A stretch of DNA of 64,000 nucleotides from Adineta vaga (Eukaryota > Animalia > Rotifera), in NCBI GenBank assembly GCA_021613535.1, contig CP075492.1:248001-312000 (forward strand), written 5' to 3'. Positions 1 to 64,000 of this stretch are shown one piece after another (positions within the stretch are counted from its first letter, which is position 1; each line of letters opens with the position of its first letter). The notes beneath the pieces were generated by a model, which worked only from the letters and a program-made list of their open reading frames with translations, searched no databases and was not told where the DNA came from. The translations under genes and the position numbers were made by a program.

Positions 1-183
1 TATAGCATACACGGACTCAAGGGTATCGCCCTAATATAGCATATGGGGGATTTAAGATTGTCTCTCTGATATAGGACATGATACAGTTGAGCTCATGTGA
101 ACTGTTAGAATAGTTCAGTCGCAAGCTGAGCTGTTTGAAAAGGTGGAAGGTTGTGAGCTAAATTCGAACTTTGCCTATCCCTA
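1..183. mobile_element. Partial copy of hAT-like MITE (same insertion as 15435-15855)
   Basis: Matches 15673-15855 and is followed by the same ATCAATAA flank. Confidence 0.7.
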
Positions 184-1020
184 ATCAATAAGCTTATGTC
201 TCATAACGTTCTCTTACACGCAGACTCAGTATTTGTGCAAGTGGTAGCTTACTACTGTATTCAAAGATTAGTTGTGGATAAAGAACAGAAAAATGGAAGT
301 ATTCTAGATAACTGCAAAGTTACACAAAAAACACTTTCTAGAAGTCTGCAATATATGTAATACTTAATGCAATTTTTTCTTGAATACTGTCATAAAAGTA
401 CAAATTGAATTCTATGACGAGTAGTGATCAGTTTAGTTTCAATTTCTTTGGAGAAAATATTTTATCATACCTCTGTTGCTACTGTGAGTTCCACTTATCT
501 CTTCATACCCTTAACTTAGATAGTGAATAAATTAAAAATGCTCTAATGAAAAACAGAAGAAAAGAATTTGTTCTCTATCAAAAATAAGAAAATTAGATAA
601 CATTTCTTTTTTGGAAACTCGTCAATTAATCAACAGAATGACGACTATATAGCTTTTATAGTTGCGGTGGCTAACTCTCGATGCAACTCGACATATATTG
701 TTAAGAAAGTATATTCAAACGACACTGTCATCATTTATGGAATAAATCTCAGTGGATTACGAACACCAAACGTGTGTCGAATAAGCCACTTCTAATGATT
801 CTCACGTCATCCTATCGCCCACAATGCAAGCCAAGATATTCGCAAAAATGAATGAAGATGACGCCGTCTTTAAAAGGCAAAAAGACTGCAGAAACCAATT
901 GCATATGGAAATCATTAAAATCAAAGTTAACACATACCTAAGATAAATGTATAGGTCATTATTAGTAATATGGGTCATCAACAACAAGAAAATTTTAATC
1001 AGAACAAGACAGAAGCCTAC

Positions 1021-4000
1021 CTTCACTTGTGATATTTGATTGTCGATCAAATATAACATCATCGATTTCCTTAGCTTCCTTCGCCAATATAAGATCAAGT
1101 TTCGATACAGCTGTCCCACACATGTTCACTTCATCCACTATTCCATTCGATACAAACAATTGTTCAATACAATATGAAAATCGTCCACCTATATCTGTAA
1201 CAGTTCCATCATCAAATAAATCATGAGAACATATCAAATGCAATGATAATCGATTATTTTCTAATGTTGGATCATAAATAAATGTTAGCATAAAATCAAA
1301 TTTAGCTGCTTCATTCGATTGCTCTAACATTACTGGCTCTAATTTTGTATCATTCATCGATAAGTAACTCTCACTTTCAGATAATGTGATAAAATTAAAC
1401 ATTATTTCCAAAAAGTTAAGATTCGATTGGTTGGCATGAAAGTCATTAAGAATATGTTGAAGTGGATAATGAGAATGTTTAAGTATTGATAAACACATTT
1501 CTCTTACAGAATGAACAACTTCATCAAATGACCAATCTCCATTGAGTTGAATACGATATGGTAATGTTGCTACAAACATTCCTATCATATTATACAATTC
1601 AGATCGATATCGATTGGCATTTATACTACCAACACATAAATCAGTTTGATTGTGAGATAATTTAAATAGAAATACATAAAATATCGATAGTCCAAGTTGA
1701 AAAAATGTAAGATGATGTGATGATGCATAGTTTAGAAATGATGTACATGTAACATCATTTAGTATTATTTGAGTTGTAGCACCTAAGCCAGATCGATGAT
1801 GAATTGATGAACGAGATCGATCATATGGTAATGATAATGAATGTTGAAGATCACATCCTTGAAGTTGAGAATACCAAAACTCACGAGATAAGGTCATATC
1901 CATGACATGTTCATGAACAGAATAATCAACATATTGAAATGAATTGTCATCTAGAGATAGCGAACTATGATCTTGATAAGCAAGAGAAAGATCACGAATA
2001 AAGATTGATGTTGATGCACCATCAAAGAAAGCATGATGAACAGTAAATAATATTAAATCATCTCTATTCAACATATCATCTTCTTCATTTGAACTGTGTG
2101 TGTGAGAACGAAGAATATGACAATTAATGACATGTCCTTTTGATAAATCAAATAAATCACATTTATTCAAGATTCTCTTCACAATTTCATTCATATCGCC
2201 ATCTTCTCTGGAAACATTCACTATTGAAAAACCAAATGTTTCACTATTATTGCTTAAAGTATTCATATCTCGACAATCTTGTACAATAATACCATTTTGA
2301 TCAAGATAAAGTGCTGTTCTCAGAATCTGATGTTTTCTAATGATACATTGATATGCATGATATAATCGTGAAATTGATATATGATGGTCATTTATCGATG
2401 ATAGACGATATATTAATGGAATAACATACATATTTGTATTGTTATCTGTCGAAGAAGAAGAAGAAGAAGAAGAAGAAAATCGAATATTTTCATCTAAGAA
2501 AATGCGTTCTTGAGCAAAGGATGCTTTCGCTAAAGTGAGAAATAGAATGTGGTTATTAGAGTATTTTTGAGATTATATTTGTTACCTGTAAGGATATTTA
2601 ATGAATGCCAAGAATGATCATCTTTACTCAATTCGGTATTGAGAATCTGATGAATAAGTTTTGCATGATCAATGATAGTTGGATGTTGAAATAGATCAGT
2701 AATAGCAATGGAATTTATTTCTAATCGAAATTCTACTTTATAGTGATGTAGAAGTTGCATAATAATTAATGAATGGCCACCAATAGAGAATATGTTTGTA
2801 TTAGTAGAGATTTGTTTTTGTTTCAATAGATCACACCATATATGATGAATAATAGATTCAATTTTATTTGTTGGTTCTACTAAATCGTTAGTATTGTTGA
2901 GTTTAGTTGAAGAGAGAACAAGGGAATCAGGTGAGGGCAATCGTTTTCGATCAATTTTTCCATTTGGATTGAGAGGTAATTTATCAAGAATAATGAAATA
3001 AGATGGAATCATATGCGGTGGAAGATGTGATTGACAATATTCATGTAATTCTTTTTCACTAACGACTGAACTTTGAACATAAGCAACTAAATGATCTTCA
3101 CCCCATTTCACCACAACACAAGTAGATATCGATGTAATACTAAGTAGGCATCGTTCAATTTCACCAAGTTCAATTCTTTGTCCATGTAGTTTGACTTGGA
3201 AATCTTTCCTTCCTTGATAGTTTAAGTTACCGTTAAAATCCATTTTAACCATATCACCTGTACGATAATTAATATCGCCATCGATTTCGATAAGTGCTTG
3301 TGCTGTCAGATCATCACGGCCAAGATAACTGGCAAAGATCCCAATTCCTCCAACAAACAGTTCTCCTTCTTGGTTGATCACCACTCTTTGTAAATGTATA
3401 TCCAAAAGTAAATGACGATAGTTTGGTAGTGGTCGTCCAATTGAAATATTTTCGGTTTCTATCATTTGATTCAATAGATGAATAGTAGAGACAACTGTCG
3501 TTTCGGTTGGACCATATATATTCCATATGTTACACTTCACTATTCCAATATTTACAATCAGATGTTTTAATTTGTCAGGGAATGGTTCTCCTTAAAAAAA
3601 TATGAAATTTGATCGTAGAATATATTTGACGAAAAAACTTAACGGCACACTGTCGTATGCTTGTAAGATTCTGATACAAATATATGAAAAGCAAATAGGA
3701 CGAAAGAAGACTACGGTTATATTCTCGCACTAAATGATCATTGAATTCGCTGCCAACTGACTCCGAATCATTAAATGTGACAATACAACTGTAGGAATGA
3801 CTGTATACGAATTATATTACGTTGTCTACACACACTTGATTATCAACTTACCAACACTACAAAGTGATCGAAGATATTTGACAGCATGATGCATGTTAGA
3901 TTGGTTAATAAAAGTGAAGAAATGAAAAAGCAAACTTGGAACAGTGTGTATATATGTAATTTGTTTGTCGTATAACACTTTTGATAGATAATCAAAATCA

Positions 4001-6330
4001 AAAGTTTCTTGTGGATGAAGCATAACTAATGTAACGCCTTTTGATAACAAACCAAGTATTTCGTGAATATGTATGTCGAATGAATATCGTGACATTTGAA
4101 TAACGGTGTCACTTTCGGCCAATATTTTGGCTCCAATAAAAGAATGCATATGTTCAGAGAAATTTCGATGTCGGATTCGAACCTACAAAAAAAGATAAGT
4201 GCGAAACAGATTTCAGAACATATATATACGAACTGCTTTCGGCATTCCAGTTGAGCCACTTGTGAAAATGATGTATGCGATACAATCCGGTGTTATAATC
4301 ACATTCGATAACCGATTTTCAATAATTCTATACATAATCACGTCGATAAACAGTATCAGATTAATATGGCATGTGATAATAACATCATTGAACTTGGACT
4401 TAGTTGATGACTCAACGAGCACAATTCGACTTTCAATTTGTTCGAAAAGAGAATGTAGCCGATGAGGTGGATCTCGTGGAGATAATGGACAATATACACC
4501 ACCTACCATCTCAATTGCCATTATACCAATTACCTAAAACACGAGAAACTTCCTGATTATAAACATCACAAAATTATCCAACGCAACCTACCATTGATAT
4601 ACTTCTCTCAACACATTGACAAATAATATCACCAACATTTACACGATATTCATTCAATAGAGTCAAAGACAATACTTGAACATAATATAACAGTTCACAA
4701 TATGTCAACGACTGTTCATCTAATTCTACAGCTAACTTTTGTGAATAGATCATCGCTTTAGAAACAAACTCATGATGAATGCATTTGACAGATGGATATG
4801 ATATTTGTGTATTATTCATTGATTGTACAAGTAATTGTTCAGTTGGTAGTGTTAATGATAATTCATACAGTGGTTTCTTCGATTGACTATCAATAATAGA
4901 TGCACATAGATCATACAACAGTGAATGAAATTGTTGTGAAATCTTATTCACAGTTTCCACGTGAAACAAATCCAATGATGCATCGATTGTACATGAAAGT
5001 TCATTAGGATCCAAAGTATGATGAAAAGTGAGAATAAAATCAAATTTACTCATCACTTCATCTTCACTAATCTCAATCGAATATGGTGCTAAAATAAGTT
5101 CATTATCACCAAGATTTACTTTGTCTTGATCGTCATTTGTCATCGATGTTATAAACTGGAATGATGTATCAAGAAATGCAGGATTTGATAGATGAGGATG
5201 TTGTGCAAGAATACGTTGAAGTGGAAAATATGAATATTTCATAGTATTTGTCATCAAGACTCGCATTTGTTGAGTGAATTGATGAAACGAAGAATGAGGA
5301 TCAAGTTGACATCGAAGAGGAATAGCATTGACAAACATTCCAATTAGAGATCTAAATTCATCTCGATAACGTCCATCTGTATTTATTCCAATACAAAGAT
5401 CTTGTTCTCCATTAGTTAATTTGAATAAAAGAATAAAATAAATTGTGAGTGCCAAATACTCAAGTGAAATGTTATTTGTCGATGCATATGTAAGAAAGTA
5501 ATGTGAAAGATCTTGTCCAAAATCAAACGAAATAGATGTTCCACGACCAGTTCGATGTTCATTTGCAAGACGATATCGATCATATGGTAATGAAAGAGAT
5601 TGATCAAGTTTACAGTCATGGAGAGTATCAAGCCAAAACATTTCTGCACCAGTCATTGACATTCCTCGTTCGATAGCAGCATCTACATAGAAGAACAACG
5701 ATGAATGACATATGAGAAAGAAAAAGTGCGATGTTGAAGATGTATACTTACAATCAAGATATCGAATATTCATTTCATCATCATTGTTGTTGTTATTGCT
5801 AAGTAATTCACCTGTTGTATATACTTGATTAAGATCATGAAGAAAGATATGCATTGATGGAAAATCAAATGCTGCATGATGAAAATTGAAGATGATTATA
5901 TCTTTATGATGAAGTAGATGATCGGAAGAGATGTGTTTGTAATAGACAAGATGACATCGAAAGACAAGACCTTGAGTAAGATTGAAGAGTTGAGGATTTC
6001 GTTTTTCTTCATGTATGATATTGTTGAGTTGTTGTTGTGTTTCATAAGTACTCTCAATAAATGTAAATAATGTCTTTTGATCTGTGGTAATGTCTATGAT
6101 TCGTTGCATCAATATATTTTTATCTTTGTCGAAAATGAATGCTGTATGAAGTGCAAGATGTTTGCTGATAGTGAGATCGAGTGCATGTTGAAGTTGTTTG
6201 ACTGATATAGTATTGTTTGTAGAAAGGTGATAAACGAAAGGCATGTTGTAGATTGCTACTTGTGGATTTTGAGGATCGAATCTCATTTGTTCGTCGAGCC
6301 AAATGCGAGCTTGTGCATATGATGCTGGTG
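1021..6330 (-). CDS. NRPS module M7 (C-A-T(alpha)-C(alpha))
   Basis: Exons 5752-6330, 4592-5682, 4234-4533, 3852-4182, 2586-3590, 1021-2529 (4815 nt = 1605 aa). Code DIHHCVIVVK. Followed by a donor at 1020 and an intron that copies 15673-16690, implying a further module beyond the window. Confidence 0.9.
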
Positions 6331-9300
6331 CTATAGTAATTGCAGTTTATGTGTGTAACAATAAAAGTGTCAACGATATACAGGACAGGATGTATTAGCG
6401 TCTATGATGATTCGCTCTATATTGACCTTGAGATTAAGATGGTCCTTCTAGTCTGATTAGCTTAGAACATCTGCCCGGGTAGCAAAAGATGTGGGTTCGA
6501 ATCCTACGTATGCTATCTTTTCTTTATTTTCTTCTATATCAGGTTTCTGTCACTTATGTCTCTTCCCTAGCTATAATATGAAGCCAATACGATGAAACAG
6601 ACTTTTTGCTGATAACTTTATTCATAGTCTGTGCCTCTCTCAAAATACAGGCTGTATTCTCGCTTGTTTAATCTAACTATTGTCTTCTAATGTGAGTTTT
6701 CGAAAAAGAGTTAAACAGTATAATTGATTTCAAATTAAGGATAGTGTAAAGCGGGTAACACGTTGGTCTCTGAGTTAACGAGAAATTTGATTTTTTGGCA
6801 AGTTCAAAAAATCAGCTGTAATACTTAGGGCAATCCAAAAGTAGTGAGGGAGGTACTCGTTTCCTTAACCAGGGATATAAAAAGAATTTCTTTTTCCACT
6901 AATGGATAGAGCGTGGTTTGCTCTATCTATCCATGCTATGTGATCACTATTAAACTGCGACTATGATAACAAAATTTTGATAGGATCTCTTTCTGTCGCA
7001 TATTCACTGGTAGCACGAACAAGAATGCTTGTGAGTATTTTTGGAATAACTTCTGATAGAAACAGGATAGACAACTGCCGTTTTCACCGTTGGAAAGAGG
7101 AGATGAGGACGCATCGAGCTATGTATCACTAATTTTTCCAATCTACTTTTTATAAGGTTTCAGCTGGCTTTTTAAAGAGGAAATCTATTCCATAAGTTGT
7201 TTACAGTAAGTTTTCAATAATCGTGTTCATATTCAAACTACTAATTGGATATCTACAGGCTGCGAAACACTCAGCTATTTAATACAATTATTTATGAATA
7301 CTATCTATTCTTAAGAAACCTCTACTACGATATTCTATCAAATTTTTCGCCTTTTCTTCTTTTTTATAAAACAAGATTTTTTTCGCCGGTTAGAAAATTG
7401 AATAAAAAATGTCGGAACTCATAATAGAAAACTCGATAGTATACTGTTCAATGCGTTTTCGTCTCCTTTTTCCAACGGTGAAAACTGCAGTTGTCTATCC
7501 TGTTTCTATCAGAAGTTATTCCAAAAATACTCACAAGCATTCTTGTTCGTGCTACCAGTGAATATGCGACAGAAAGAGATCCTATCAAAATTTTGTTATC
7601 ATAGTTGCAGTTTAATAGTGATCACATAGCATGGAAAGATAGAGCAAACCACGCTCTATCTATTAGTGGAAAAAGAAATTCTTTTTATACCCCTGATTAA
7701 GGAAACAAGTACCTCCCTCACTACTTTTAGATTGCCCTAAGTATGTTATCTGTAAAACTGATCAAAAGCCGCCATGGTTGAGTGGTTACGTGTTCGACAC
7801 GTAGCTACTAGGTACTGTGTTCAAACTTCAGTAACGTCAGGCATGGAATGAAGCTGGACAAGTCACTAACGGCTAAGTTGTCTGAAAATGACTCAATCCA
7901 CATGAGTCATTCGTACTGACTACACACTTAGTCAGTATGTTGGACGGCAGAGGGTCCAGATACCACCGTCCGTAAAAAGAAAAAGACGAAAGAAACCGGC
8001 TGCATGTGGATAAAAATACTAATAATAGCCGCGGCCGGCCGGCAGCGGGCGTTAAGCCTATGCGACGTTATTATTATATTATTATTATTCTTATAAAACT
8101 GATCAAACGATCTTTTAGGATTAGTACTAAACTCAATGAAAATGATGACTTGTTTGTTATTTCGAAAAATTTCATCGATAGTCCAGACACCGAGGTATAT
8201 ATGTATGAGAGGTATAACGGTCTTTGCAATCTGATAGTTGGAAGCGGTTTTATGCAGTCTAAGCCGTTTAGAGCGATCTAAGTGTTCTATGTGGTCTTGT
8301 GGTTTAGAGCGGTATAATCAAGGGGGAGGGGGGGGGGGAGAAGCAAGACTTCATATACTTCAAACAGAATTTGAAATCTCATGAAGTACCGTGAATTACT
8401 GTGAAGTATGAGTGAAGTATGAGTGAAGTATTAATGAAGTATTAGTGAAGTACTAGTGAAATAGAGTGAAGTATGATTGAAGTAGATTGAAGTACCAATG
8501 AAGTCTCGCTTTTCCTCCCTTAGCTATAATGCGATCTAGGCAGCACAACAATCTTAGAGATCATAGATTGCATTGGTTAGGGGGCATAGATCACTTTACT
8601 GCTTAGATCGTATAGATAGCAGCAGAGCGTTATAGCATGAATAGTGCTGTAAATAACGTAGCTAATATAAATGGTATTTATATATATATATATTTCATTT
8701 TGTTACAAAATTATCACGGACATCAAATTGATATACTCTGTTTTTTTGGTGAATAAAAATCATTGGTCATTGTTATGTAGTCGATAGCTTTATTACGGTA
8801 GGACACGTTTTAACAGTTTTTTTAATCATAGAAGCATTGCTTTATTAACATCAATGAGACATCCGTGTCACAAAGGTTGTCTGCAGTTGAAATGATCCTT
8901 TTCGTTCTGCATATGCTAGTGCCTTACATAGTTTTTATCTGTCGATGATGGCAAAATAATAAAAGACCACCACACTATCGAAAATTTAACAAAATCCCTC
9001 TTGCGATGAGATACATCACACACAACCTTCCTATAACCGTAAATTCTAGCTGATGGAACGTACATACTTTCCAAAGCTTGATATTAGTAATGGATGTTTA
9101 TACACACTGTATACATATGCCTAAAACTCACGTCTATATTTCCACTAGTAGTACACTTAGATTATAGTCATATCTTTAAGAACTCATTTATTGCTTCAAA
9201 AAATTGAGCAGTCAGACAGCAGAAAAACAGAGGAATTGCCGTATTCGTAAGTCATCTTGACAGAATTGAGAACACTATGTTTTTCAAAAATTACCGAGAT

Positions 9301-12300
9301 GTCAAATATTTTACGGAGTTATTCTGTAGAGCTATCAGAAAAATACGAATCTAAGTCTGTATGAAATTGTTATTGCTGTTTCTTGTAATCATTCATTGAT
9401 TTATTCATAACACAAGAACGTGATAAAGGCGTATGCGATTATGAAAAGTCATAATCATCTTATTTCTCTTTTTCACAATGAATGTTTCATTTTTCACTCA
9501 TGTTGAAACTCTACTTATGATAAGTTCTTCATGCTTCTTATGCCAGAGGGTAAAAGAAGTGAATGTAGTATGGGCACAAATGGAGTAACAGACGATAGAC
9601 TCTGTAGAAAAGTAAAACTAGATTAATTTTCTTTTTTCGAAAATTCTCAAATGAATGAATCAATCGAACGTTAACCATTACAGTTTCAACAGCGAAAAGT
9701 AAACTCAAATGCAGATCCATATTATACGAAAGTCCTGAGAAATATGTCGTATGCAAATACTCCCCAAATCGATGAAGTTTTTTTGCAACATTTGATCTTA
9801 ATAAAGAACCTTGAAGAGTGCGTATTCTCTTACAGAATCTTCTTCTTTATCTCACCCAACTTAAGACTGTGAGGGTGAGGATGGTCTTTAGCATAAATGC
9901 AATCTAAAGAAGCTCAGATTTTAGCAGATTTCAGCAACTGTTTCTTTTGATATTTCAATGCTTTAGGAAGTTTTGTAGCATCTACGAAGCCTTTTGAAAG
10001 CTTCCGTAGAACCTCGACTATTATAGAATGTATAGTCACATATTATATGACATCATGAAGAGCTGTTTCTCAGTAAAATATGTATCTTTAAGGAGGGAAA
10101 ACAAGAAAATTGGAAAACATACCTTCAAACATTATATGTGGTTGTCGACAAAATATAACATCATCAATTTCGCTAGCTTCACTCGGTAAAATAAGACTAA
10201 GTCGTGATCGAGATATGAGACATGTATCCATTTCATTCATTGTTTCAGTAGATGAAAACAATTGTTCAATACAGTATGAAAATCGTTCAGCTATACTTGC
10301 AATAGTTTTCTTATCAAATAAATCATGAGAACCAACTAAACTAAATGATAATTTACCATTTTCAAATGTTGGATCATAAATGAATGTTAGCATAAAATCA
10401 AATTTAGCTGCTTCATTCGATTGCTCTAACATTACTGGCTCTAATTTTGTATCATTCATCAGTAGGTAAGTGACACTTTCAGACAAAGTGATAAAATCGA
10501 ACATTGTTTCCAAAAAGCTAAGATTAGATTGATTGAGATGAAAGACACTGAGAATATGTTGAAGTGGATAATGAGAATGTTCAAGAATTGATAAACACCT
10601 TTCTTTTACATAATGAACAAGTTCATCAAATGACCAATTTGCATTGAGGTGAATACGATATGGTAATGTTGCTACAAACATTCCTATTACATTATGTAAT
10701 TCAGCTCGATATCGATTAGCATTGAGACAAGAAATACATAGATCATCGTCACGAGTTAATCTGGATAGAAATAGATGGAATATGGACAATCCAAGTTGAA
10801 AAAGTGTAACATGCTGTGATGATGCATAATTGACAATCGATGTGCTTATTTGATCGTTAAGTGTGATATGAATTGTAGAAGCTAAGCCAGATCTCTCGTG
10901 ATTGGATGAACGAGATCGATCATATGGTAACAATAATGGACGTTCGAAATTATATGTTTCTAACTGTGAAAACCAAAATTCTTGTGATGGTTTCATGTCA
11001 ATTTGACGTTCATGGATAGTGTAATCAATATATTGTAATGCTTCTTCGTCATCTTTCTCTGACCATTCTGAAGCGTTATTATAAGCAAAACAGAAATCTT
11101 TGAAAAAAATTGGTCCACATGATCGATCATATGCTGCATGATGAAGAGCAATTACTAGAACATGGGAACTTGTTATCAATTGATTATCATTATTTTTGTT
11201 AATTGAGTTCTGATGTTGAAGTATTTGACAATGAAAAACACGACCTATTGATAAATCAAATAAATTAGGATCAAAAGTTAGTTGAGTAATTATATTTTGA
11301 AGTTCATTGTTATCTTTGAACGTTCGATTTGCAACTATCGTGAATGTGTTATTGGTATCTGTAATATATTGTTCTAAGATGCCATTATCGGTGTTAAATT
11401 TGATAGATGTATGTAGTATTTTATGTTTGTTCAAGATATATTGAAGAGTTTTCAATAAACGCGTGAATGACAATGATCCTTGAGTAATTCTTAGCACCAT
11501 TAGTTCATTATAAATAGCAATATTTTTTGAAAAACGAACTTGTTCATCAAGAGAGATGCGTTCTTGGACAAAAGAAGCAATACCTAGGAATTGAACGAAA
11601 GAATGTATGAATTCATCCAATAATTTTCTAATAGATATATTCACCTCGATTGATATGCAATGAATGCCAAACTGTTGCTTGCATATCATTGTTTGTAACT
11701 GTTTGAAGTAGTTGTGAATGTTGAAATATAGTTGGCTGTTGAATAAATGAGCCTAACAAGAGTGTGTGAGTATCAAAATTGAACAATGATTGATAGCGAT
11801 GATAAAGTTCAATGAATAAAAGAGAATGACCACCAATGGTAAAAAAGTTTGTAGTCCTGGAAATATGATGTCCTTTATAATCAAGAACTTGTCGCCAAAC
11901 ATTACATATACGAGACTCTAATTCATTGAGTGGTGCTTCGAAGTGATTATCTGTTGATACAGTTGCCGAAGAGAAGTTAGGTGAAGGTAAATGTTTTCGA
12001 TCAATTTTTCCATTTGGATTGAGAGGTAATTTATCAAGAATAATGAAATGAGATGGAATCATATGCGGTGGAAGATGTGATTGACAATATTCATGTAATT
12101 CTTTTTCACTAACGACTGAACTTTGAACATAAGCAACTAAATGATGTTGACCCCATTTCATGACAACACAAGTAGATATCGATGTAATACTAAGTAGGCA
12201 TCGTTCAATTTCACCAAGTTCAATTCTTTGTCCATGTAGTTTGATTTGAAAATCTTTTCTTCCTTGATATTGAACAAGATTATTCTGATCTATCTTGACA

Positions 12301-54300: not shown

Positions 54301-57300
54301 ATAGTCATTACGAAGATGATGAAGACGTCAATGATGGTAATAAGTTTAAATTTTTTCTCTCTTCAAAATGATTACTGCAATTTGCTTTAATATCAACCAA
54401 CTTATATGCTCACGCCATGTAGAAATTAAACTGGAACGGTTTTCCAGCGTTAACTGTTGGAACGAGTGATTGCGATCGTAAGTTCCATTCATTTGGCTTA
54501 ACTGTATGTACTGATGAAAAAGAACCAGACTTCTCCTTTATTTTTAAAAGTATTATCGACGGCGTAAAACGAACAACTGGATTAGCCTTTACAGTTGAAG
54601 TACTTAGAGCTGATGGTTCTGGTACTATACGCAACGCTTAGCAAATGCTTTTTTAAGAAGGATAAAATGGTCATGTGTTAGTCTCATATGCGGCGCAGCA
54701 CTGAAAAAAAATGAAGAGCTGGAAAATCGATTCGAAGAAAAGAAAAGAAATATTAGATGATATTGACACATAACAATTATGTGAATCAGAAACTGTGTTT
54801 CGTAATGCATCATCTTTATTTTTGAAGCAATGGAGAAAATCGAAAAAAGAGTTTACAGAATATTTTGAAAACGCATAGTTAACAGTTTTTGATTTATGTC
54901 ATGAATGATATAATGGTGCGTTCACACCAAACACTAACAATCAATTAGAAGCTATGAACAAAATCATCAAAGACGAATATACTTTTAGAGAACGACATAC
55001 ATTATCGAGATTTCTTACACGTGCAAGTGATATTGTCAATAAATGGTTTATGTCCTAGGAGCAAAATCGAACAGACATATTTGTGTTTTCTACAGAACTA
55101 ACAATCCCAGTTGCACAATGGACCGATGCATATCATTTTGAAAATCCTCCAAGTTTGTTTTACAACTACAATCACAAAGACAAAGGGTTTTACTGATTAT
55201 TATATACCAGCAGGTGATGCAGCCAATATCACAAAAAAATGATATCCAAAGATATAAGAACAAACCGTAGACTACATTTGTACAATTTAAGTATCGTCAG
55301 TTTGAAATTTGGAAATTAACTATACTAGACATTGTATCGAAATGGAAAAATGAGTTTTGTAATTGTCGAAATTTTTTGTAAGAATACATATGTAAAAACG
55401 TGTTTGGCATGTCAATTAGATTGAAACACTGTAAACCACCTTCAATAGCGAAGAATGTACTTATGGGTTAGAAAAGAAAGCGAGAACCACCACGATAAGC
55501 AATACAACCTTTGTTAATCGATTAACTGTTCAAACTAAAGTTTTTACTTAAACATATTTGTTTTTCTACTTAACAAAAGTTATATATATGTATATACTTA
55601 TCAATGCTAAATATTTTGTTTAGCAAACATAACTCCGTCTACTGACATGAGAATTTAAATAAACCACTTAGCAAAAAATCTTTTCTTACTTAGATCGATA
55701 TTAAACCAATTACTTAGAAAACATTGAATATATTACTAGAAATTATATTTTTTACTTTACCATCCTGATATATGTCAATATAGAATCGGATCGGATAAAA
55801 TGTAGGAATTGACAGATGCAACTGCACGGTTTGTGATACATCTGTAAATTTCTGATACACAAATGCAGATTGTCAGTATATGGTACTAACATTATACAAT
55901 CGTATTGTCGAAGTACCCGACCTCTTAATCCCTTATCGATTAACTTACAATAGTCTAAAGCGACAGAAGGGATATAGTAACAGTCGTCTATGAACTATAC
56001 CACTCCAGCTAAGTTAAGGATGGATCGTTTCAGTAAATTGAAAAGTGCTAACTCGCACACTTGTGCACTGAAACTATAGATTCCTATCAACTCAAATACT
56101 AATATTTTGATCAACTTACCACTGCTACAAAGTGATCGAATATATCTTACAATATGATCCGCGTTACGTTCGCTGATGAAAGTGAAGAAATGAAAAAGCA
56201 AACTTGGAACAGTGTGCATATATGTTATTTGTTTGTTGGATAATACTTTCGATAGATAATCAAAATCAATAGTTCCTTGTGGATGAAGCATAACTAACGA
56301 AGCACCCTTTGATAAAATACCAAGTATCTCTTGAACATGAATATCGAATGAACATCGTGCCATTTGTATTGCAGTGTCATATTCGTTGAATGAATTTATG
56401 AAAGTCAAAGAATGCATACATTCATCGAAATTTCTATGACGAATTTGGGCCTATAAAGGAAAAGAGAAAGATTAATTCAACAACAAGAAACAGGCAATAA
56501 GCAATAACGAACCGCTTTCGGTACTCCAGTTGAGCCACTTGTAAAAATGATGTAAGCAATATTTTTTGGTGTTACTACAATGTTTGACAATTGATCACAG
56601 CCAATATTATTTTGATTGTCATTATTAGTTAATATTAAATCAACATTCACTACGATTGTTTCATTATGTATCATAGTCTTTGTTAACCAATGAGCAATAA
56701 CAAGATGACTTTGAGTCTGCTCGACAAGTGTATGCAGACGATATGAAGGGTCTCGAGGTGATAATGGACAATATACACCACCTACCATTTCTATTGCCAT
56801 TATACCAATTACCTAGAATGAACAACAATTTCTCCTAAATTCTAAGAGACACTCTTCTCATTCATCAACTTACCATTGATATACTTCTCTCCACACATTG
56901 ACAAATAATATCACCAACATTTACACGATATTCATTCAATAGAGTCAAAGACAATACTTGAACATAATACAACAGTTCACAATATGTCAACGACTGTTCA
57001 TCTAGTTCCACAGCTAACTTTTGTGAATAGATCATCGCTTTAGAAACAAACTCATGATGAATGCATTTGACAGATGGATATGATATTTGTGTATTATTCA
57101 TTGATTGTACAAGTAATTGTTCAGTTGGTAGTGTTAATGATAATTCATACAGTGGTTTCTTCGATTGACTATCAATAATAGATGCACATAGATCATACAA
57201 CAGTGAATGAAATTGTTGTGAAATCTTGTTCATAGTTTCCACGTGAAACAAATCCAATGATGCATCGATTGTACATGAAAGTTCATTAGGATCCAAAGTA

Positions 57301-60300
57301 TGATGAAAAGTGAGAATAAAATCAAATTTACTCATCACTTCATCTTCACTAATCTCAATCGAATATGGTGCTAAAATAAGTTCACTATCACCAAGATTTA
57401 CTTTGTCTTGATCGTCATTTGTCATCGATGTTATAAACTCGAATGATGTATCAAGAAATGCAGGACTTGATAGATGAGGATGTTGTGCAAGAATACGTTG
57501 AAGTGGAAAATATGAATATTTCATACTATTTGTCATCAAGACTCGCATTTGTTGAGTGAATTGATGAAACGAAGAATGAGGATCAAATTGACATCGAAGA
57601 GGAATAGCATTGACAAACATTCCAATTAGAGATCTAAGTTCATCTCGATAACGTCCATCTGTATTCATTCCAATGCATAGATCTTGTTCTCCATTGGTTA
57701 ATTTGAATAAGAAGATGAAATAAGTCATGAGTGACAAATATTCAAGTGACATGTTATTTGTCGATGCATATGTAAGAAAGTATTGTGAAAGATCTTGTCC
57801 AAAATCAAACGAAATAGATGTTCCACGACCAGTTCGATGTTCATTTGCAAGACGATATCGATCATATGGTAATGAAAGAGATTGATCAAGTTTACAGTCA
57901 TGGAGAGTATCAAGCCAAAACATTTCTGCACCAGTCATTGACATTCCTCGTTCGATAGCAGCATCTACATAGAAGAACAACGATGAATGACATATGAGAA
58001 AGAAAAAGTGCGATGTTGAAGATGTATACTTACAATCAAGATATCGAATATTCATTTCATCATCATTGTTGTTGTTATTGCTAAGTAATTCACCTGTTGT
58101 ATATACTTGATTAAGATCATGAAGAAAGATATGCATTGATGGAAAATCAAATGCTGCATGATGAAAATTGAAGATGATTATATCTTTATGATGAAGTAGA
58201 TGATCGGAAGAGATGTGTTTGTAATAGACAAGATGACATCGAAAGACAAGACCTTGAGTAAGATTGAAGAGTTGAGGATTTCGTTTTTCTTCATGTATGA
58301 TATTGTTGAGTTGTTGTTGTGTTTCATAAGTACTCTCAATAAATGTAAATAATGTCTTTTGATCTGTGGTAATGTCTATGATTCGTTGCATCAATATATT
58401 TTTATCTTTGTCGAAAATGAATGCTGTATGAAGTGCAAGATGTTTGCTGATAGTGAGATCGAGTGCATGTTGAAGTTGTTTGACTGATATAGTATTGTTT
58501 GTAGAAAGGTGATAAACGAAAGGCATGTTGTAGATTGCTACTTGTGGGTTTTGAGGATCGAATCTCAATTGTTCGTCGAGCCAAATGCGAGCTTGTGCAT
58601 ATGATGCTGGTGCTATAGCAATTGTATTCTATTCGTGTAGGGATAGAAACACCAATGATGTAGAGGTGCTGAGGACGCACTCTCCCGAGTGATAGTTTCA
58701 TGGGGTGTCTCTCTCTCTTTTACAAGTACGTTCAGTATTCATGCGAGTGGTAGCTAAGTACTCTCTTCAAAGATGAGCTATGGATAAAAAATAAAAATAT
58801 ATGAGTGGCCTAAATCACTCCACAGTTATATCAGAAGTGCCTGTAAAGTATTTTTAAATACTTGAAATATTTAATACGATTATCCTTTAGAACTGTAATT
58901 GAAGTACAGAGTGAATTCGACGTTAAGTAGCGATCCAGTAAGTTTCAGCTTTTATATAGGAAATACTTCACCATGTCTCTTTCGATATATATGTTTACAC
59001 TAATCCCTTCGTTTTCTTTAACAAAGAAAGTAAATGAACTACATATACTATAGGTAAAAGCAGAAGCAAACAAAATATATTCTCTATCAGAAACTAAAAC
59101 GAACTAAATTTTGTCTTTCGAACACTCACAAATGAATCAAACAAATGTCAACTATGTATCTTTCATAGCTGCGATGGCTAAGTGCTTATGTTGTTTAAGA
59201 TAAATTGAAACTATATTCTGTGCAAACGTCAGTGGCATCATTCATAGAATAAATTTCAAGAAATCGGGAACGAAATACTTCTCATAATTCTTACACTAGG
59301 GTATGGCCTACAATGTTAGTCACGATTTTAGAGAGGAGGAGTCCAAATGTCACTGTCTATAAGAGGAGAAAAGCTGCAGAGACCAGATTGATATGTAAAT
59401 CATAACAATTATAGTTGGCATCTACACAAGACACGTCTATGAAAGATTATTCGTAATATGGATCATCAACAACAATAAAATTTTAATCACAACAAGACAG
59501 AAACCTACCTTCACTTGTGATATTTGATTGTCGATCAAATATAACATCATCGATTTCCTTAGCTTCCTTCGGCAATATAAGATCAAGTTTCGATACAGCT
59601 GTCCCACACATGTTCACTTCATCCACTATTCCATTCGATACAAACAATTGTTCAATACAATACGAAAATCGTTCACCTATATCTGTAACAGTTCCATCAT
59701 CAAATAAATCATGAGAACATATCAAATACAATGATAATCTATTGTTTTGTAATGTTGGATTATAAACAAATGTTAACATGAAATCAAATTTAGCTATTTC
59801 ATCTGATTGTTCTAATGATACTTCTTCTAATTTTGTATCATTCATCGATAAGGAACTCTCACTTTCAGATAAAGTGATAAAATCGAACATTGTTTCCAAA
59901 AATGTAAGATTCGATTGGTTGGCATGAAAGTCATTAAGAATATGTTGAAGTGGATAATGAGAATGTTTAAGTATTGATAAACACATTTCTCTTACAGAAT
60001 GAACAACTTCATCAAATGACCAATCTCCATTGAGTTGAATACGATATGGTAATGTTGCTACAAACATTCCTATCATATTATACAATTCAGATCGATATCG
60101 ATTGGCATTTATACTACCAACACATAAATCAGTTTGATTGTGAGATAATTTAAATAGAAATACATAAAATATCGATAGTCCAAGTTGAAAAAATGTAAGA
60201 TGATGTGATGATGCATAGTTTAGAAATGATGTACATGTAACATCATTTAGTATTATTTGAGTTGTAGCACCTAAGCCAGATCGATGATGAATTGATGAAC

Positions 60301-63300
60301 GAGATCGATCATATGGTAATGATAATGAATGTTGAAGATCACATCCTTGAAGTTGAGAATACCAAAACTCACGAGATAAGGACATATCCATGACATGTTC
60401 ATGAACAGAATAATCAACATATTGAAATGAATTGTCATCTAGAGATAGCGAACTATGATCTTGATAAGCAAGAGAAAGATCACGAATAAAGATTGATGTT
60501 GATGCACCATCAAAGAAAGCATGATGAACAGTAAATAATATTAAATCATCTCTATTCAACATATCATCTTCTTCATTTGAACTGTGTGTGTGAGAACGAA
60601 GAATATGACAATTAATGACATGTCCTTTTGATAAATCAAATAAATCACATTTATTCAAGATTCTCTTCACAATTTCATTCATATCGCCATCTTCTCTGGA
60701 AACATTCACTATTGAAAAACCAAATGTTTCACTATTATTGCTTAAAGTATTCATATCTCGACAATCTTGTACAATAATACCATTTTGATCAAGATAAAGT
60801 GCTGTTCTCAGAATCTGATGTTTTCTAATGATACATTGATATGCATGATATAATCGTGAAATTGATATATGATGGTCATTTATCGATGATAGACGATATA
60901 TTAATGGAATAACATACATATTTGTATTGTTATCTGTCGAAGAAGAAGAAGAAGAAGAAAATCGAATATTTTCATCTAAGAAAATGCGTTCTTGAGCAAA
61001 GGATGCTTTCGCTAAAGTGAGAAATAGAATGTGGTTATTAGAGTATTTTTGAGATTATATTTTGTTACCTGTAAGGATATTTAATGAATGCCAAGAATGA
61101 TCATCTTTACTCAATTCGGTATTGAGAATCTGATGAATAAGTTTTGCATGATCAATGATAGTTGGATGTTGAAATAGATCAGTAATAGCAATGGAATTTA
61201 TTTCTAATCGAAATTCTACTTTATAGTGATGTAGAAGTTGCATAATAATTAATGAATGGCCACCAATAGAGAATATGTTTGTATTAGTAGAGATTTGTTT
61301 TTGTTTCAATAGATCACACCATATATGATGAATAATAGATTCAATTTTATTTGTTGGTTCTACTAAATCGTTAGTATTGTTGAGTTTAGTTGAAGAGAGA
61401 ACAAGGGAATCAGGTGAGGGCAATCGTTTTCGATCAATTTTTCCATTTGGATTGAGAGGTAATTTATCAAGAATAATGAAATAAGATGGAATCATATGCG
61501 GTGGAAGATGTGATTGACAATATTCATGTAATTCTTTTTCACTAACGACTGAACTTTGAACATAAGCAACTAAATGATCTTCACCCCATTTCACCACAAC
61601 ACAAGTAGATATCGATGTAATACTAAGTAGGCATCGTTCAATTTCACCAAGTTCAATTCTTTGCCCATGTAGTTTGATTTGAAAATCTTTTCTTCCTTGA
61701 TAATAGATACGACCATTATGGTTTGTTTTGGCAAGATCACCAGTTCGATAAAATCGTGCATTATCTATGTAAATCAGTGTGCTCTTTGTCAAATCATCAC
61801 GGCCAAGATAGCCAGCAAAGATGCCAACTCCTCCGATTAGTAGCTCTCCTTGTTGGTTTATCAAAACAGTTTGCAAATACTGATCCAACACTAGATGTCG
61901 ATAGTTTGGAAGTGGCCGTCCTATCGGAATATTTTCCGTTTCTTTGGTCGCGTTCAACAGATAATAAGTACAATCAATAGTCGCCTCTGCTGGACCATAT
62001 AAATTCCATAGTTGACAAGTGTCTGGTAACTTATTGACGATTAGATTGACCAGTTTCGATGAACAAGTTTCACCTAGAATAGAAGTTTATTCCTATTGTT
62101 TCTGATAAGTTTCGGATAAGTTTTACTAACCACCAGTAGTAACTGAGCGCAGATACTTCAAATTCTTGAAATCGCTCTGTGTACTCAGAAAAGTAAAGAA
62201 ACTGTGAAGCAAACTTGGAACAGTCGTAATCGAAGTAATTTGTTTGTCTTGAATAATATTGAGCAGATAGTCAAACTGAAGAATTCCTCTGGGACGTAAC
62301 ATAACTAACGCACCTCCACTAGTCAGAGCACCCATTATATCTTGCAAATGATCATCAAAAGAGCAGCGTGACATCTGAAGAATTCTATCGTCTCTATTTA
62401 TAATGTTTGTGAAACTTAATGAGTCTATCATATGAGTAATATTTCGATGACGAATTTTGATCTACAAATAAGTAGAAAAATCGCTGTTAGACTTTTCCGA
62501 TTACAATATATTGTTTCACAAACCGCTTTCGGTACTCCAGTTGAGCCACTTGTAAAAATGATGTAAGCAATATTTTTTGGTGTTACTACAATGTTTGACA
62601 ATTGATCACAGCCAATATTATTTTGATTGTCATTATTAGTTAATATTAAATCAACATTCACTACGATTGTTTCATTATGTATCATAGTCTTTGTTAACCA
62701 ATGAGCAATAACAAGATGACTTTGAGTCTGCTCGACAAGTGTATGCAGACGATATGAAGGGTCTCGAGGTGATAATGGACAATATACACCACCTACCATT
62801 TCTATTGCCATTATACCAATTACCTAGAATGAACAACAATTTCTCCTAAATTCTAAGAGACACTCTTCTCATTCATCAACTTACCATTGATATACTTCTC
62901 TCCACACATTGACAAATAATATCACCAACATTTACACGATATTCATTCAATAGAGTCAAAGACAATACTTGAACATAATATAACAGTTCACAATATGTCA
63001 ACGACTGTTCATCTAGTTCCACAGCTAACTTTTGTGAATAGATCATCGCTTTAGAAACAAACTCATGATGAATACATTGGACAGATGGAAATGATATTTG
63101 TGTATTATTCATTGATTGTACAAGTAATTGTTCAGTTGGTAGTGTTAATGATAATTCATACAGTGGTTTCTTCGATTGACTATCAATAATAGATGCACAT
63201 AGATCATACAACAGTGAATGAAATTGTTGTGAAATCTTATTCACAGTTTCCACGTGAAACAAATCCAATGATGCATCGATTGTACATGAAAGTTCATTAG

Positions 63301-63975
63301 GATCCAAAGTATGATGAAAAGTGAGAATAAAATCAAATTTACTCATCACTTCATCTTCACTAATCTCAATCGAATATGGTGCTAAAATAAGTTCACTATC
63401 ACCAAGATTTACTTTGTCTTGATCGTCATTTGTCATCGATGTTATAAACTGGAATGATGTATCAAGAAATGCAGGATTTGATAGATGAGGATGTTGTGCA
63501 AGAATACGTTGAAGTGGAAAATATGAATATTTCATAGTATTTGTCATCAAGACTCGCATTTGTTGAGTGAATTGATGAAACGAAGAATGAGGATCAAATT
63601 GACATCGAAGAGGAATAGCATTGACAAACATTCCAATTAGAGATCTAAATTCATCTCGATAACGTCCATCTGTATTCATTCCAATGCATAGATCTTGTTC
63701 TCCATTGGTTAATTTGAATAAGAAGATGAAATAAGTCATGAGTGACAAATAGTCAAGTGACATGTTATTTGTCGATGCATATGTAAGAAAGTATTGTGAA
63801 AGATCTTGTCCAAAATCAAACGAAATAGATGTTCCACGACCAGTTCGATGTTCATTTGCAAGACGATATCGATCATATGGTAATGAAAGAGATTGATCAA
63901 GTTTACAGTCATGGAGAGCATCAAGCCAAAACATTTCTGCACCAGTCATTGGCATTTGTTTTTCGATAGCAGCAT
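1021..63975 (-). CDS. Giant multimodular spliced NRPS, partial at both ends (41 exons, ~10,980 aa in window, 7 x C-A-T-C)
   Basis: Core motifs recur in every module: C1 (SYAQARIW/SFAQERI), HHxxxD, A3 TSGSTGxPK, A5 GP(A/T)E, A7 YRTGD, A8 GRKDFQxKLHGQRIELGEIE, A10 NGKIDRK and T GGHSL. All junctions are GT-AG with matching phase, including the inter-module junction GAA G|gt...ag|CA CCA GCA TCA TAT (E-A-P-A-S-Y). Confidence 0.93.
6441..6510 (+). pseudogene. Degenerate tRNA-like sequence (tRNA pseudogene or SINE head); copy near 45689-45755
   Basis: T-arm GTGGG-TTCGAAT-CCTAC with a B-box and an A-box-like TAGTCTGATTAG. Acceptor and anticodon arms are non-canonical, and the second copy has a 4-nt deletion. 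Confidence 0.45.
6824..7741. mobile_element. Non-autonomous DNA transposon (MITE/foldback) with ~290-bp TIRs and TA flanks
   Basis: TA|CTTAGGGCAATC...GATTGCCCTAAG|TA; arms about 6824-7115 and 7450-7741. Confidence 0.85.
7767..8093 (+). mobile_element. tRNA-derived SINE
   Basis: A-box TGGTTGAGTGG, B-box GTTCAAAC, (TTA)n tail, and a perfect 14-bp TSD TAAAACTGATCAAA (7753-7766, 8094-8107). Confidence 0.85.
8318..8525. mobile_element. Small MITE with internal ~11-bp TGAAGTA minisatellite; copy about 47560-47775
   Basis: Imperfect TIR GGGGAGAAGCAAGACTTCAT / ATGAAGTCTCGCTTTTCCTCCC. The second copy has one more repeat unit and a shorter G-run. Confidence 0.6.
10123..15190 (-). CDS. NRPS module M6 (C-A-T(beta)-C(beta))
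   Basis: C/A-N region 13452-15190, then exons 13090-13389, 12697-13027, 11645-12640, 10123-11583. Code DAEAGALVGK. Confidence 0.9.
15435..15855. mobile_element. hAT-like MITE
   Basis: TAGAGGTAG...CTATCCCTA termini, perfect 8-bp TSD ATCAATAA, internal inverted symmetry. Confidence 0.8.
16691..28863 (-). CDS. NRPS module M5 (C-A-T(alpha)-C(alpha))
   Basis: C/A-N region 27125-28863, then exons 26764-27063, 26371-26701, 18256-19260, 16691-18199. A 7110-nt TE-filled intron (19261-26370) lies within the A domain. Code DIQHCILIGK. Confidence 0.9.
19736..19800. repeat. Perfect palindrome (32-bp arms, 1-nt spacer)
   Basis: GTTTAATTGGAATCATGACTTGTGTGCAGTAG-T-CTACTGCACACAAGTCATGATTCCAATTAAAC. Confidence 0.95.
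19801..20585. mobile_element. MITE with GTTATAAC subterminal repeats
   Basis: Imperfect TIR CAGTGTGTGAGTTAAAACTG / CAGTTTTAACTCCCACTATG; inverted arms about 19830-19945 and 20425-20545. Confidence 0.7.
20871..21282. mobile_element. hAT-like MITE
   Basis: Perfect TIR CAGTGGCGCAACCAGG; 8-bp TSD AATATAGA/AATATGGA. Confidence 0.85.
22520..22763. mobile_element. hAT-like MITE nested in the left arm of 22280-23526
   Basis: TIR (G/C)AGyrGTGT(A/C)ACATATCCCGCA and 8-bp TSD CGTCTTTT. The empty site is visible in the opposite arm near 23287-23294. Confidence 0.85.
22929..23218. mobile_element. MITE with TCCGA/TCGGA repeats nested in the right arm of 22280-23526
   Basis: CCCAG...CTGGG termini with TTA/ATA flanks. 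The empty site is visible in the left arm near 22827-22852. Confidence 0.75.
25204..25384. mobile_element. hAT-like MITE
   Basis: TAGCGGCGTAACC...GGTTACGCCACTA with a perfect 8-bp TSD CCTCATTC. Confidence 0.85.
29762..34874 (-). CDS. NRPS module M4 (C-A-T(alpha)-C(alpha))
   Basis: C/A-N region 33136-34874, then exons 32775-33077, 32387-32717, 31327-32331, 29762-31270. Code DIQYCGLLQK. A5 reads NLCGPAE; first C motif HHEAFD. Confidence 0.9.
35577..36545 (+). mobile_element. Helentron/DINE-1-like non-autonomous rolling-circle element (5' limit uncertain)
   Basis: GGAC-rich microsatellite followed by the 3' hairpin TAGTGTACTCA-CTTTT-TGAGTACACTA (36515-36541) and an A-run. Confidence 0.55.
36667..37910 (-). 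pseudogene. Degenerate piggyBac transposon relic
   Basis: The minus strand reads KPQVVLDYKKRG*GIDLSGQLSAIYTCLRHSIEW (piggyBac KPxxxLDYNxxxGGVDxxDQ...W motif) and a Cys-rich remnant TTWYCKCC. A TTAA|CCCT end lies at 36663-36670. Confidence 0.7.
38030..39448. mobile_element. Palindromic foldback element with ~673-bp near-perfect arms
   Basis: 38030-38702 is the reverse complement of 38777-39448 with two visible mismatches and a ~74-nt spacer. GGTG...CACC termini with degenerate TTAA-like flanks (possibly Kolobok-type). Confidence 0.85.
40545..45578 (-). CDS. NRPS module M3 (C-A-T(beta)-C(beta))
   Basis: C/A-N region 43843-45578, then exons 43485-43784, 43109-43436, 42066-43061, 40545-42005. 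Code DVQQDGLVDK. Post-T C motif HHVAFDR. Confidence 0.9.
46068..46985. mobile_element. Copy of MITE 6824-7741 (inherited by segmental duplication)
   Basis: Same 918-bp sequence and same flanks. Confidence 0.85.
47011..47337 (+). mobile_element. Copy of SINE 7767-8093
   Basis: Same sequence and same 14-bp TSD. Confidence 0.85.
49371..58612 (-). CDS. NRPS module M2 (C-A-T(beta)-C(beta))
   Basis: C/A-N region 56874-58612 (contains a 69-nt intron), then exons 56513-56812, 56120-56450, 50892-51887, 49371-50831. A 4232-nt intron lies within the A domain. Code DIQHCSLIDK. Post-T C motif HHAAYDR. Confidence 0.9.
52559..52918. mobile_element. Diverged Tc1/mariner-like MITE
   Basis: TA|CACGATG...CATCCTG|TA with internal inverted motifs (TTAGTGAGAACCT / AGGTTCTCACTAA). 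An extra half-copy follows at about 52920-53120. Confidence 0.55.
53700..55525 (+). pseudogene. Dead Mutator (MULE) transposase with SWIM finger
   Basis: Motifs KLNWNGFPALTVGTSDCDRKFHSFGLTVC, VLRADG, TPNTNNQLEAMNKIIKDEYTFRER and CNC...YICK, broken by several stops and frameshifts. Confidence 0.8.
59509..63975 (-). CDS. NRPS module M1 (partial C-A-T(alpha)-C(alpha))
   Basis: Exons 62885-63975, 62524-62823, 62131-62461, 61069-62073, 59509-61011. Manual specificity code DDQTTGLIDK. Post-T C motif HHAFFDG. Confidence 0.9.
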
Positions 63976-64000
63976 CTATATAGAAGAACAAGTGACAAAT

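Follow-up and report, generated by a model that had tools for sequence, protein, structure and literature searches.

The stretch of DNA analysed here, 64,000 nucleotides (nt) long and called the window throughout (its positions carry the prefix w where needed), comprises bases 248001-312000 of chromosome 3 (CP075492.1) of the bdelloid rotifer Adineta vaga and is an internal slice of a longer gene. We consider it likely, with good confidence, that the window holds the middle of one hybrid polyketide synthase (PKS) and nonribosomal peptide synthetase (NRPS) gene of about 106 kb, which lies on the minus strand at about 235.6-341.3 kb of chromosome 3 (chr3). In its content, the gene runs from a fully reducing PKS module and a condensation (C) domain through 11 NRPS modules, each with a first C domain (C1), an adenylation domain (A), a carrier (T), and a second C domain (C2), to an end domain that is probably of the Pls/PosA type, and it is split into about 70 exons. 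Across the window the catalytic motifs are intact and the reading frame is unbroken, exons are transcribed, and one intron is removed from the RNA; we strongly infer, rather than observe, that all modules lie on a single transcript. The locus is subtelomeric, 248 kb from the chromosome end, in the chromosome-level Av20 assembly (100.8 Mb in six contigs, with the window on contig 3). Both the locus and its reading as a single synthetase are already in print and are not new as a discovery; the entry is Cluster 3.1 in the inventory of Nowell et al. 2024 (Supplementary Data 9; Nat Commun 15:5787, PMC11258130; region3.1:225210..345004, Chrom_3 = CP075492.1).

All open reading frames (ORFs) of at least 150 amino acids (aa) in the window lie on the minus strand and form a repeating series of units. 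The Pfam order in each unit is Condensation (about 570 aa), three short AMP-binding pieces, the end of AMP-binding together with AMP-binding_C and PP-binding, and a second Condensation of 470-533 aa. There are seven such units (module 3 in part and modules 4-9), with about 80-99% DNA identity to each other outside the A-domain core. AMP-binding and AMP-binding_C are found in every unit, as is the carrier family PF00550, and all seven modules keep A3 (TSGSTGxPK), A4 (FD), A5 (NxYGPxE), and A10 (GKxDR), the phosphopantetheine Ser motif GGHSL, and HHxxxD in both C domains, which in C1 reads FNFHH[AE]AFD. The substrate pockets were read from motif anchors with GrsA numbering, and the codes and their numbering are approximate; the seven codes are all different (DDQTTGLIDK, DIQHCSLIDK, DVQQDGLVDK, DIQYCGLLQK, DIQHCILIGK, DAEAGALVGK, and DIHHCVIVVK), and Asp235 and Lys517 are retained in each.

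The C2 domains are of two types, the canonical HHAFFDG (478-type) and HH[AV]A[YF]DR (470-type, with Arg for the usual Gly), and both occur along one line. For the comparison of types they were grouped as follows.

40545-42005, 49371-50831, and 10123-11583, minus strand: C2 set 1
1021-2529, 16691-18199, 29762-31270, and 59509-61011, minus strand: C2 set 2

The solved chains nearest to the C domains are true C domains (TycC 2jgp, Txo1, and LgrA), and both C1 and C2 are nearer to true condensation domains than to epimerases. An epimerisation role for C2 was considered and rejected, given its C1-type start motif (SFAQERI.LDEQ) and a PDB search that gave C domains and no chain named epimerisation. 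A Pfam match to Toxin_R_bind_C in the 470-type C2 (22 bits versus a cut-off of 25) was treated as noise. In two other sequences (P0214 and P0221), an A domain comes directly after a C2-like domain, which is interrupted at the same ..SLSM/V intron site (here and below, a slash marks a splice site); the C2 type is therefore also the ordinary C domain of a C-A module in some bdelloid sequences.

Splice sites were curated by hand from conserved protein motifs, without use of the exon list in an earlier note on this DNA. The exons were joined in a local script for stop counting and motif reading, and homology searches were run exon by exon. The resulting model has 41 exons on the minus strand from w63975 to w1021, which together make 32,970 coding nt, or 10,990 codons, with no stops, and all 40 introns are GT..AG. 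Each module has six exons (C1a, C1b, A-1, A-2, A-3+T, and C2), and the layout in the window is as follows.

63976-64000, minus strand: tail of the 63-nt phase-1 intron in the first C domain of module 3; donor GTAAGT at w64038, outside the window; next exon from w63975 (..LRYLD/YAAIE..)
59509-63975, minus strand: module 3 of 11 (partial), with C1b, A, T, and C2 (478-type); exons 63975-62885, 62823-62524, 62461-62131, 62073-61069, 61011-59509
58613-59508, minus strand: inter-module intron, 896 nt, phase 1; GAAG/GTAGGT .. CTATAG/CACCAGC; no ORF of at least 90 aa
49371-58612, minus strand: module 4, C1-A-T-C2 (470-type); exons 58612-58034, 57964-56874, 56812-56513, 56450-56120, 51887-50880, 50831-49371
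51888-56119, minus strand: A-domain intron of module 4, 4232 nt, phase 1; donor cagtg/GTAAGT, acceptor TTTAACAG/gagaa; ..IRSLCSS/GEPFNPK
45579-49370, minus strand: inter-module intron, 3792 nt, phase 1; duplicates w6331-10122 with 99% identity
40545-45578, minus strand: module 5; exons 45578-45000, 44930-43843, 43784-43485, 43436-43109, 43061-42054, 42005-40545
34875-40544, minus strand: inter-module intron, 5670 nt, phase 1; dispersed repeat w35767-36545 and foldback w38025-39453; no Pfam domain in its ORFs
29762-34874, minus strand: module 6; exons 34874-34296, 34226-33136, 33077-32775, 32717-32387, 32331-31327, 31270-29762
28864-29761, minus strand: inter-module intron, 898 nt, phase 1
16691-28863, minus strand: module 7; exons 28863-28285, 28215-27125, 27063-26764, 26701-26371, 19260-18256, 18199-16691
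19261-26370, minus strand: A-domain intron of module 7, 7110 nt, phase 1; tattg/GTAAGT .. TTTCACAG/gagaa; ..LRSLCSI/GEPFNSK; no Pfam domain
15191-16690, minus strand: inter-module intron, 1500 nt, phase 1
10123-15190, minus strand: module 8; exons 15190-14612, 14542-13452, 13389-13090, 13027-12697, 12640-11645, 11583-10123
6331-10122, minus strand: inter-module intron, 3792 nt, phase 1; ..IMFE G/GTATGT .. CTATAG/CA CCA, read as A-P-A-S-Y-A-Q; made of dispersed repeats
1021-6330, minus strand: module 9; exons 6330-5752, 5682-4592, 4533-4234, 4182-3852, 3590-2586, 2529-1021
5683-5751, minus strand: hidden intron, 69 nt, stop-free, phase 1, inside the first-C "ORF" of module 9; its removal is shown by RNA
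1-1020, minus strand: next inter-module intron (1502 nt, to chr3:247519), of which the first 1020 nt lie in the window; donor GAAG/GTAGGC at w1020; next C1 exon from w-482

The six inter-module introns thus measure 896, 3792, 5670, 898, 1500, and 3792 nt and are all phase 1. Across the model, 31 introns are of the usual bdelloid size (47-69 nt), one has 261 nt, and eight have 0.9-7.1 kb. The module boundaries share a donor (GAAG/GTA[TG]G) and an acceptor (TAG/CACCAGCATC), with the same phase-1 sites at the six boundaries in the window and at four outside it. Every first C domain contains a stop-free phase-1 intron of 63-69 nt at ..RYLD/Y.., a phase-0 intron separates C1 from A at ..SM/VIG.., and another phase-0 intron directly follows the A3 motif TSGSTGxPKA. 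The mid-A-domain intron is phase 1, at ..LRSLCxx/GE.., and measures 47-261 nt outside modules 4 and 7; in module 4, the 4232-nt intron at this place falls between Pfam AMP-binding positions of about 291 and 295. T and C2 are separated by a phase-1 intron, and so are C2 and the next C1; if left unspliced, the C2 frame runs 8-11 codons into the gap and then meets a stop. In the partial module 3, where the Pfam domains were also called, the motifs TSGSTGVPKA, SFD, NLYGPAE, GKIDRK, GGHSL, and HHAFFDG are intact.

This independent rebuild arrived at the 41 in-frame exons, free of stops and frameshifts and with the same ends, that the earlier note had described, and it reproduced the phase-matched GT/AG inter-module introns of 896-5670 nt given there, including the example junctions 10123-6330 and 16691-15190. 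The single open frame stands as well, with a length of 10,990 codons that makes the earlier figure of >11,000 aa slightly high; the two kilobase-size A-domain introns (4232 and 7110 nt) go unmentioned in that note. It had also proposed that the gene continues past both ends of the window, which the flanking sequence bears out by adding modules, the PKS, and the end domain. A peptide of at least 7 residues was therefore an understatement, as the complete gene has 11 NRPS modules behind a PKS loading module.

The PKS and two of the modules lie upstream of the window, and a further two follow downstream, together with the end domain. With the flanks included, there are eleven first-C starts (w81336, 75340, 64608, 58612, 45578, 34874, 28863, 15190, 6330, -482, and -7072), and the A3 motif likewise occurs eleven times. 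Further upstream on this strand, successive ORFs at chr3 ~341.3-332.5 kb match ketoacyl-synt, Ketoacyl-synt_C, Acyl_transf_1, PS-DH, ADH_zinc_N, KR, and PP-binding. This gives the order KS-AT-DH-ER-KR-ACP, followed by a C2-type domain and directly upstream of the NRPS modules, so that at the level of ORFs and domains the locus is a hybrid PKS-NRPS. In the final module, a hexapeptide-repeat domain, probably of the Pls/PosA type, takes the place of C2. The last exon, downstream of the window, carries AMP-binding_C, PP-binding, Hexapep repeats, and a partial TIGR02353 match (E 3e-31; 108.5 bits versus a curated cut-off of 423; a single exon spans profile positions 48-456 of 695).

The long introns are mosaics of short dispersed repeats and foldbacks that have many copies in the genome, mostly near chromosome ends. 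In the 5670-nt intron, a repeat of about 780 bp (w35767-36545) has more than 50 genome copies with 83-93% identity, again mostly near chromosome ends, and a foldback (w38025-38702 / 38776-39453) has 678-nt arms that are 99% complementary around a 73-nt loop. An inverted pair at w6821-7131 / 7437-7744 (94.5%) forms a foldback of about 920 bp, with a duplicate at 46065-46375 / 46681-46988 and a relative on contig 5 (1837064-1837982). The 7110-nt A-domain intron of module 7 contains inverted arms of 242 nt that are 100% identical (w22278-22519 / 23287-23528), and many of its pieces have copies elsewhere in the genome. For the ten longest ORFs in the gaps, there was no credible Pfam family, and no transposase or other gene family was recognised in them. 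Repeat insertion is the simplest explanation of the intron sizes. Parts of the array have also been duplicated with their gaps, as self-alignment pairs w4468-12484 with w43719-51731 at 98.4% identity and w26360-31960 with w56109-61702 at 98.8%. The duplicated 3.8-kb intron (6331-10122 versus 45579-49370) has diverged by 0.43% and its flanking exons by 2.2%, which suggests a very recent segmental duplication, after which gene conversion from other modules altered the exons in patches.

Contigs from three RNA runs (X1, X2, and X3, dated 2024, with the same organism label and behaving as RNA) and from a DNA run (X6) were placed on the genome. Those of X1-X3 cover w5000-6332 and w10503-10999, and none falls on w6400-10400; the DNA run covers w6800-10400, most of the gap that is empty in the RNA runs. 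A joint 5682->5752, which reads CT..AC on the plus strand and GT..AG on the minus strand, is present in X1, X2, and X3 and absent in X6. Therefore, the exons are transcribed and the hidden 69-nt intron is removed. Another RNA contig (X3 record 22) corresponds exactly to the C1a exon of module 8, a sequence also present in modules 10 and 11, and it continues for 5 letters past the exon start, of which the first two (AG) alone fit the genome. The C2 exons end in two ways, ..TTTGAAG and ..AGTGAAG, which agree in exactly 5 final letters (TGAAG), the sixth being different. If cis-spliced mRNAs of both C2 types were present, a contig assembled from k-mers should thus break exactly 5 letters out, and an unspliced or spliced-leader form should end elsewhere. 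Junction transcripts had been suggested in the earlier note as a check; for junction 10123-6330, the one followed here, the exons proved to be transcribed and the gap to be free of RNA contigs, with no contig crossing from one to the other. The junction peptides ..IMFE-APASYAQAR and ..NITSE-APASYAQAR (..IMFEAPASYAQAR and ..NITSEAPASYAQAR) could be encoded solely by a cis-spliced mRNA.

The sequence around the boundaries points the same way. The acceptor is where the conserved opening motif of C1, APASYAQARIWLDEQ, begins, ahead of the first ATG, and three units have TTG-only starts in the ORF list; a unit read as a gene of its own would therefore lose the motif. Modules 4 and 7 have kilobase introns inside their A domains, so either long introns are spliced in this gene or these two modules are dead. 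In Adineta steineri, 19 gene models have a contiguous junction, ..NE/APAS[FY]AQ.., and two contigs have an intron at this same junction, one of 137 nt and phase 1 (L004; ends GAAG/GTATAT..ATAG/CACCAGC) and one of about 2.2 kb (L005). The shorter of these is too short for a terminator and a promoter, and the different sizes at one junction mean that the position of the intron is old and its length variable. The spliced peptide IRYLD/YAAIERG also matches A. steineri LRYLDYAVIEQQ.

Among metagenome sequences, dozens of "prokaryotic" ORFs terminate in ..NEGM[FY].., a read-through of the same donor. Many of these ORFs (JGI/ENA; P0008-P0120 and P0122-P0213) are named "NRPS component F". As their ends read through a bdelloid G/GTATG donor, they represent rotifer DNA in metagenomes and not bacterial donors. 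When metagenome contigs were scanned for an intron-less C2-C1 junction, a strict pattern gave 0 matches and a loose one 21, with no C2-C1 junction among them. Protein-collection searches with the C2 exon and with its last 190 residues found no near-identical Logan-derived junction protein, and the best match beyond the GenBank model was 59-61% identical.

Taken together, the phases at the boundaries, the position of the C1 motif, the A. steineri junctions, and the pattern of RNA contigs support the proposal, made in the earlier note, that the fragmented ORFs are really one gene. Collinearity of the modules in one polypeptide would fit one open frame in silico and the contiguous A. steineri junctions, while no RNA molecule was seen across an inter-module junction. 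Splicing across the long introns, a single polypeptide, and its product are what we infer.

It is also important to set out what weighs against a single gene. No RNA contig or read of X1-X3 was seen across an inter-module junction (the 3.8-kb gap w6331-10122), the last 277 nt of the C2 exon (w10123-10400) had 0 RNA contigs in the same runs, and the five-letter argument is drawn from lengths given in a table and not from the letters themselves. GenBank annotation splits the locus, and its model I4U23_010868 (791 aa, hypothetical protein) ends inside an inter-module gap. Kilobase introns are unusual for the A. vaga genome, which is known for tiny ones. Repeats of 5.6-8 kb that are 98-99% identical make the assembly of the array fragile. 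Finally, in modules 1 and 2, which lie upstream of the window, the frame changes within C2 (chr3 ~325450 and 318900; w77450 and w70900). It can be restored only through weak GT..AG candidates of 38-53 nt, so that each change is either an extra intron or a frameshift.

The GenBank model itself joins the C2 donor to a 34-codon terminal exon in the gap, at about w9915-10018 (with a copy near 49160-49265). No RNA contig was found at this exon in the three runs.

It is possible, although unlikely, that the locus is a transcribed but partly decaying relic with repeat-inflated introns, in which complete, properly spliced mRNA forms rarely if at all and the 11-module enzyme is not produced. Such decay would be in keeping with the eight introns of 0.9-7.1 kb packed with dispersed repeats and foldbacks, a low RNA k-mer depth, the changes of frame in C2 of modules 1 and 2, and the subtelomeric site. 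However, a relic would not be expected to retain 10,990 codons without a stop or frameshift, with catalytic motifs all intact and pocket codes that are distinct and maintained, and published manual curation lists the cluster as "intact". Between paralogous units, we counted 182 synonymous and 252 non-synonymous differences, numbers that are no more than indicative because the pairs overlap and are gene-converted, and exon indels occur in threes only. This substitution pattern and the indels in threes suggest constraint, which would be at odds with decay.

Alternatively, and with a rather low probability in our estimate, the modules could be a tandem array of separately expressed one-module genes (C1-A-T-C2) that cooperate in trans or act alone, the gaps being intergenic. 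The existing annotation, with a model that ends within a gap, implies separate units; the gaps (0.9-5.7 kb) are far above typical introns here, C2 frames hit a stop 8-11 codons past the proposed donor, and junction-spanning RNA was not seen. But separate units would be left without a start codon ahead of the conserved C1 motif, with TTG-only starts in three of them, and modules 4 and 7 would still need their 4.2-kb and 7.1-kb A-domain introns. In A. steineri, donor and acceptor lie at the same codon around the 137-nt intron and the 19 gene models are contiguous, and the RNA contig described above ends 5 letters past the acceptor in letters that do not fit the genome.

A further reading, to which we give little credence, keeps the single gene and adds alternative splicing between modules, by which one gene of about 21,000 codons would yield a family of shortened or chimeric assembly lines and a set of lipopeptides. 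Phase-1 introns with near-identical sites lie at every boundary and in mid-A, and therefore any donor joined to any later acceptor would keep the frame. If this were true, the chimeric lines would add to what would already be the largest enzyme known from an animal. Finally, it is very improbable that module number or order is partly an assembly artefact, with fewer, more, or reordered units hidden by mis-joined 5.6-8 kb repeats (98-99%), for while self-alignment repeats at 98.4% and 98.8% identity and the catalogue authors' description of subtelomeric clusters as hard to assemble speak for it, the copies differ at many fixed positions and in A-pocket segments, the exon-intron edge at w9819-10412 is bridged by independent short-read contigs from 2013, in which, as in the assembly, the C1 exon is preceded by more than one kind of sequence, and an artefact would alter the module count and not the nature of the gene.

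In the single-gene reading, the primary transcript would be cis-spliced to one reading frame. The PKS module would build a reduced acyl starter, each A domain (with Asp235 and Lys517 kept) would load an alpha-amino acid onto its carrier Ser (GGHSL), and the C domains would join the residues, to give an N-acylated undecapeptide as the putative product. The phase-1 introns at module boundaries and in two A domains would have grown to 0.9-7.1 kb through insertions of short dispersed repeats. If so, the gene would direct the synthesis of an acylated peptide of 11 residues that is not known to have been isolated, and if its frame of about 21,000 codons is translated as one chain, the product would be among the largest animal proteins. 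What the exon model adds is the growth of module-boundary introns to kilobases by repeat insertion, without a break in the frame, in a genome of tiny introns. It also shows that the GenBank gene models at the locus are fragments and that an ORF-based catalogue over-counts 21-23 residues per module, because the stop-free intron of 63-69 nt is read through.

That catalogue is the inventory of Nowell et al. 2024 (PMC11258130), who linked the bdelloid NRPS/PKS gene family to defence against a fungal pathogen. That NRPSs are abundant in bdelloids is also noted in a review of these enzymes in animals. The table of the inventory gives Cluster 3.1 as minus strand, "intact", with an aa_length_est of 20965 and NRPS_term, and states that lengths "generally assume" co-translation; the cluster is the longest in the table and has no listed defect. 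The earlier note had named bdelloid rotifers as carriers of such genes, and the locus does belong to the Av20 inventory of the horizontally acquired NRPS/PKS set. The PKS-NRPS AVAG|g48151 of the main text was considered as the same locus, and it is probably a different cluster, since it has a predicted heptadepsipeptide and two near-identical copies. A text search of the literature found no other paper combining Adineta, NRPS, and introns.

The closest comparison is with the Cluster 3.1 entry itself, which describes the same DNA. Its ORF rows are the window ORFs plus 248,000 (e.g., 248995-250431 = w995-2431), and it gives ORF-level domain hits and assumes co-translation. It includes neither an exon-intron model nor transcript evidence for the cluster, and it mentions neither the kilobase introns nor the hidden introns of 69 nt. 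Clusters 1.9, 3.2, 3.6, and 5.7 of A. vaga are likewise subtelomeric, intron-split, and multi-module, with Condensation ORFs in tandem after PCP and before the following module, but they carry frameshifts or stops listed in the catalogue, whereas Cluster 3.1 has none.

Outside rotifers, the epsilon-poly-L-lysine synthetase Pls/PosA (TIGR02353) resembles the last exon of the A. vaga gene, which matches it after AMP-binding_C and PP-binding. Unlike in Pls/PosA, the match is partial and below the cut-off, and the domain ends an 11-module line and not a single A-T. Single-polypeptide mega-NRPSs are known from bacteria, in the kolossin synthetase of Photorhabdus (~16,000 aa), and from fungi, in the peptaibol synthetase Tex1 of Trichoderma (~21,000 aa). 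As modelled, the A. vaga gene would share with these many collinear C-A-T modules in one frame and a comparable predicted size. In contrast to both, it lies in an animal, is split into ~70 exons, starts with a reducing PKS and ends with a putative Pls-type domain, and places two C-type domains between a carrier and the A domain that follows it.

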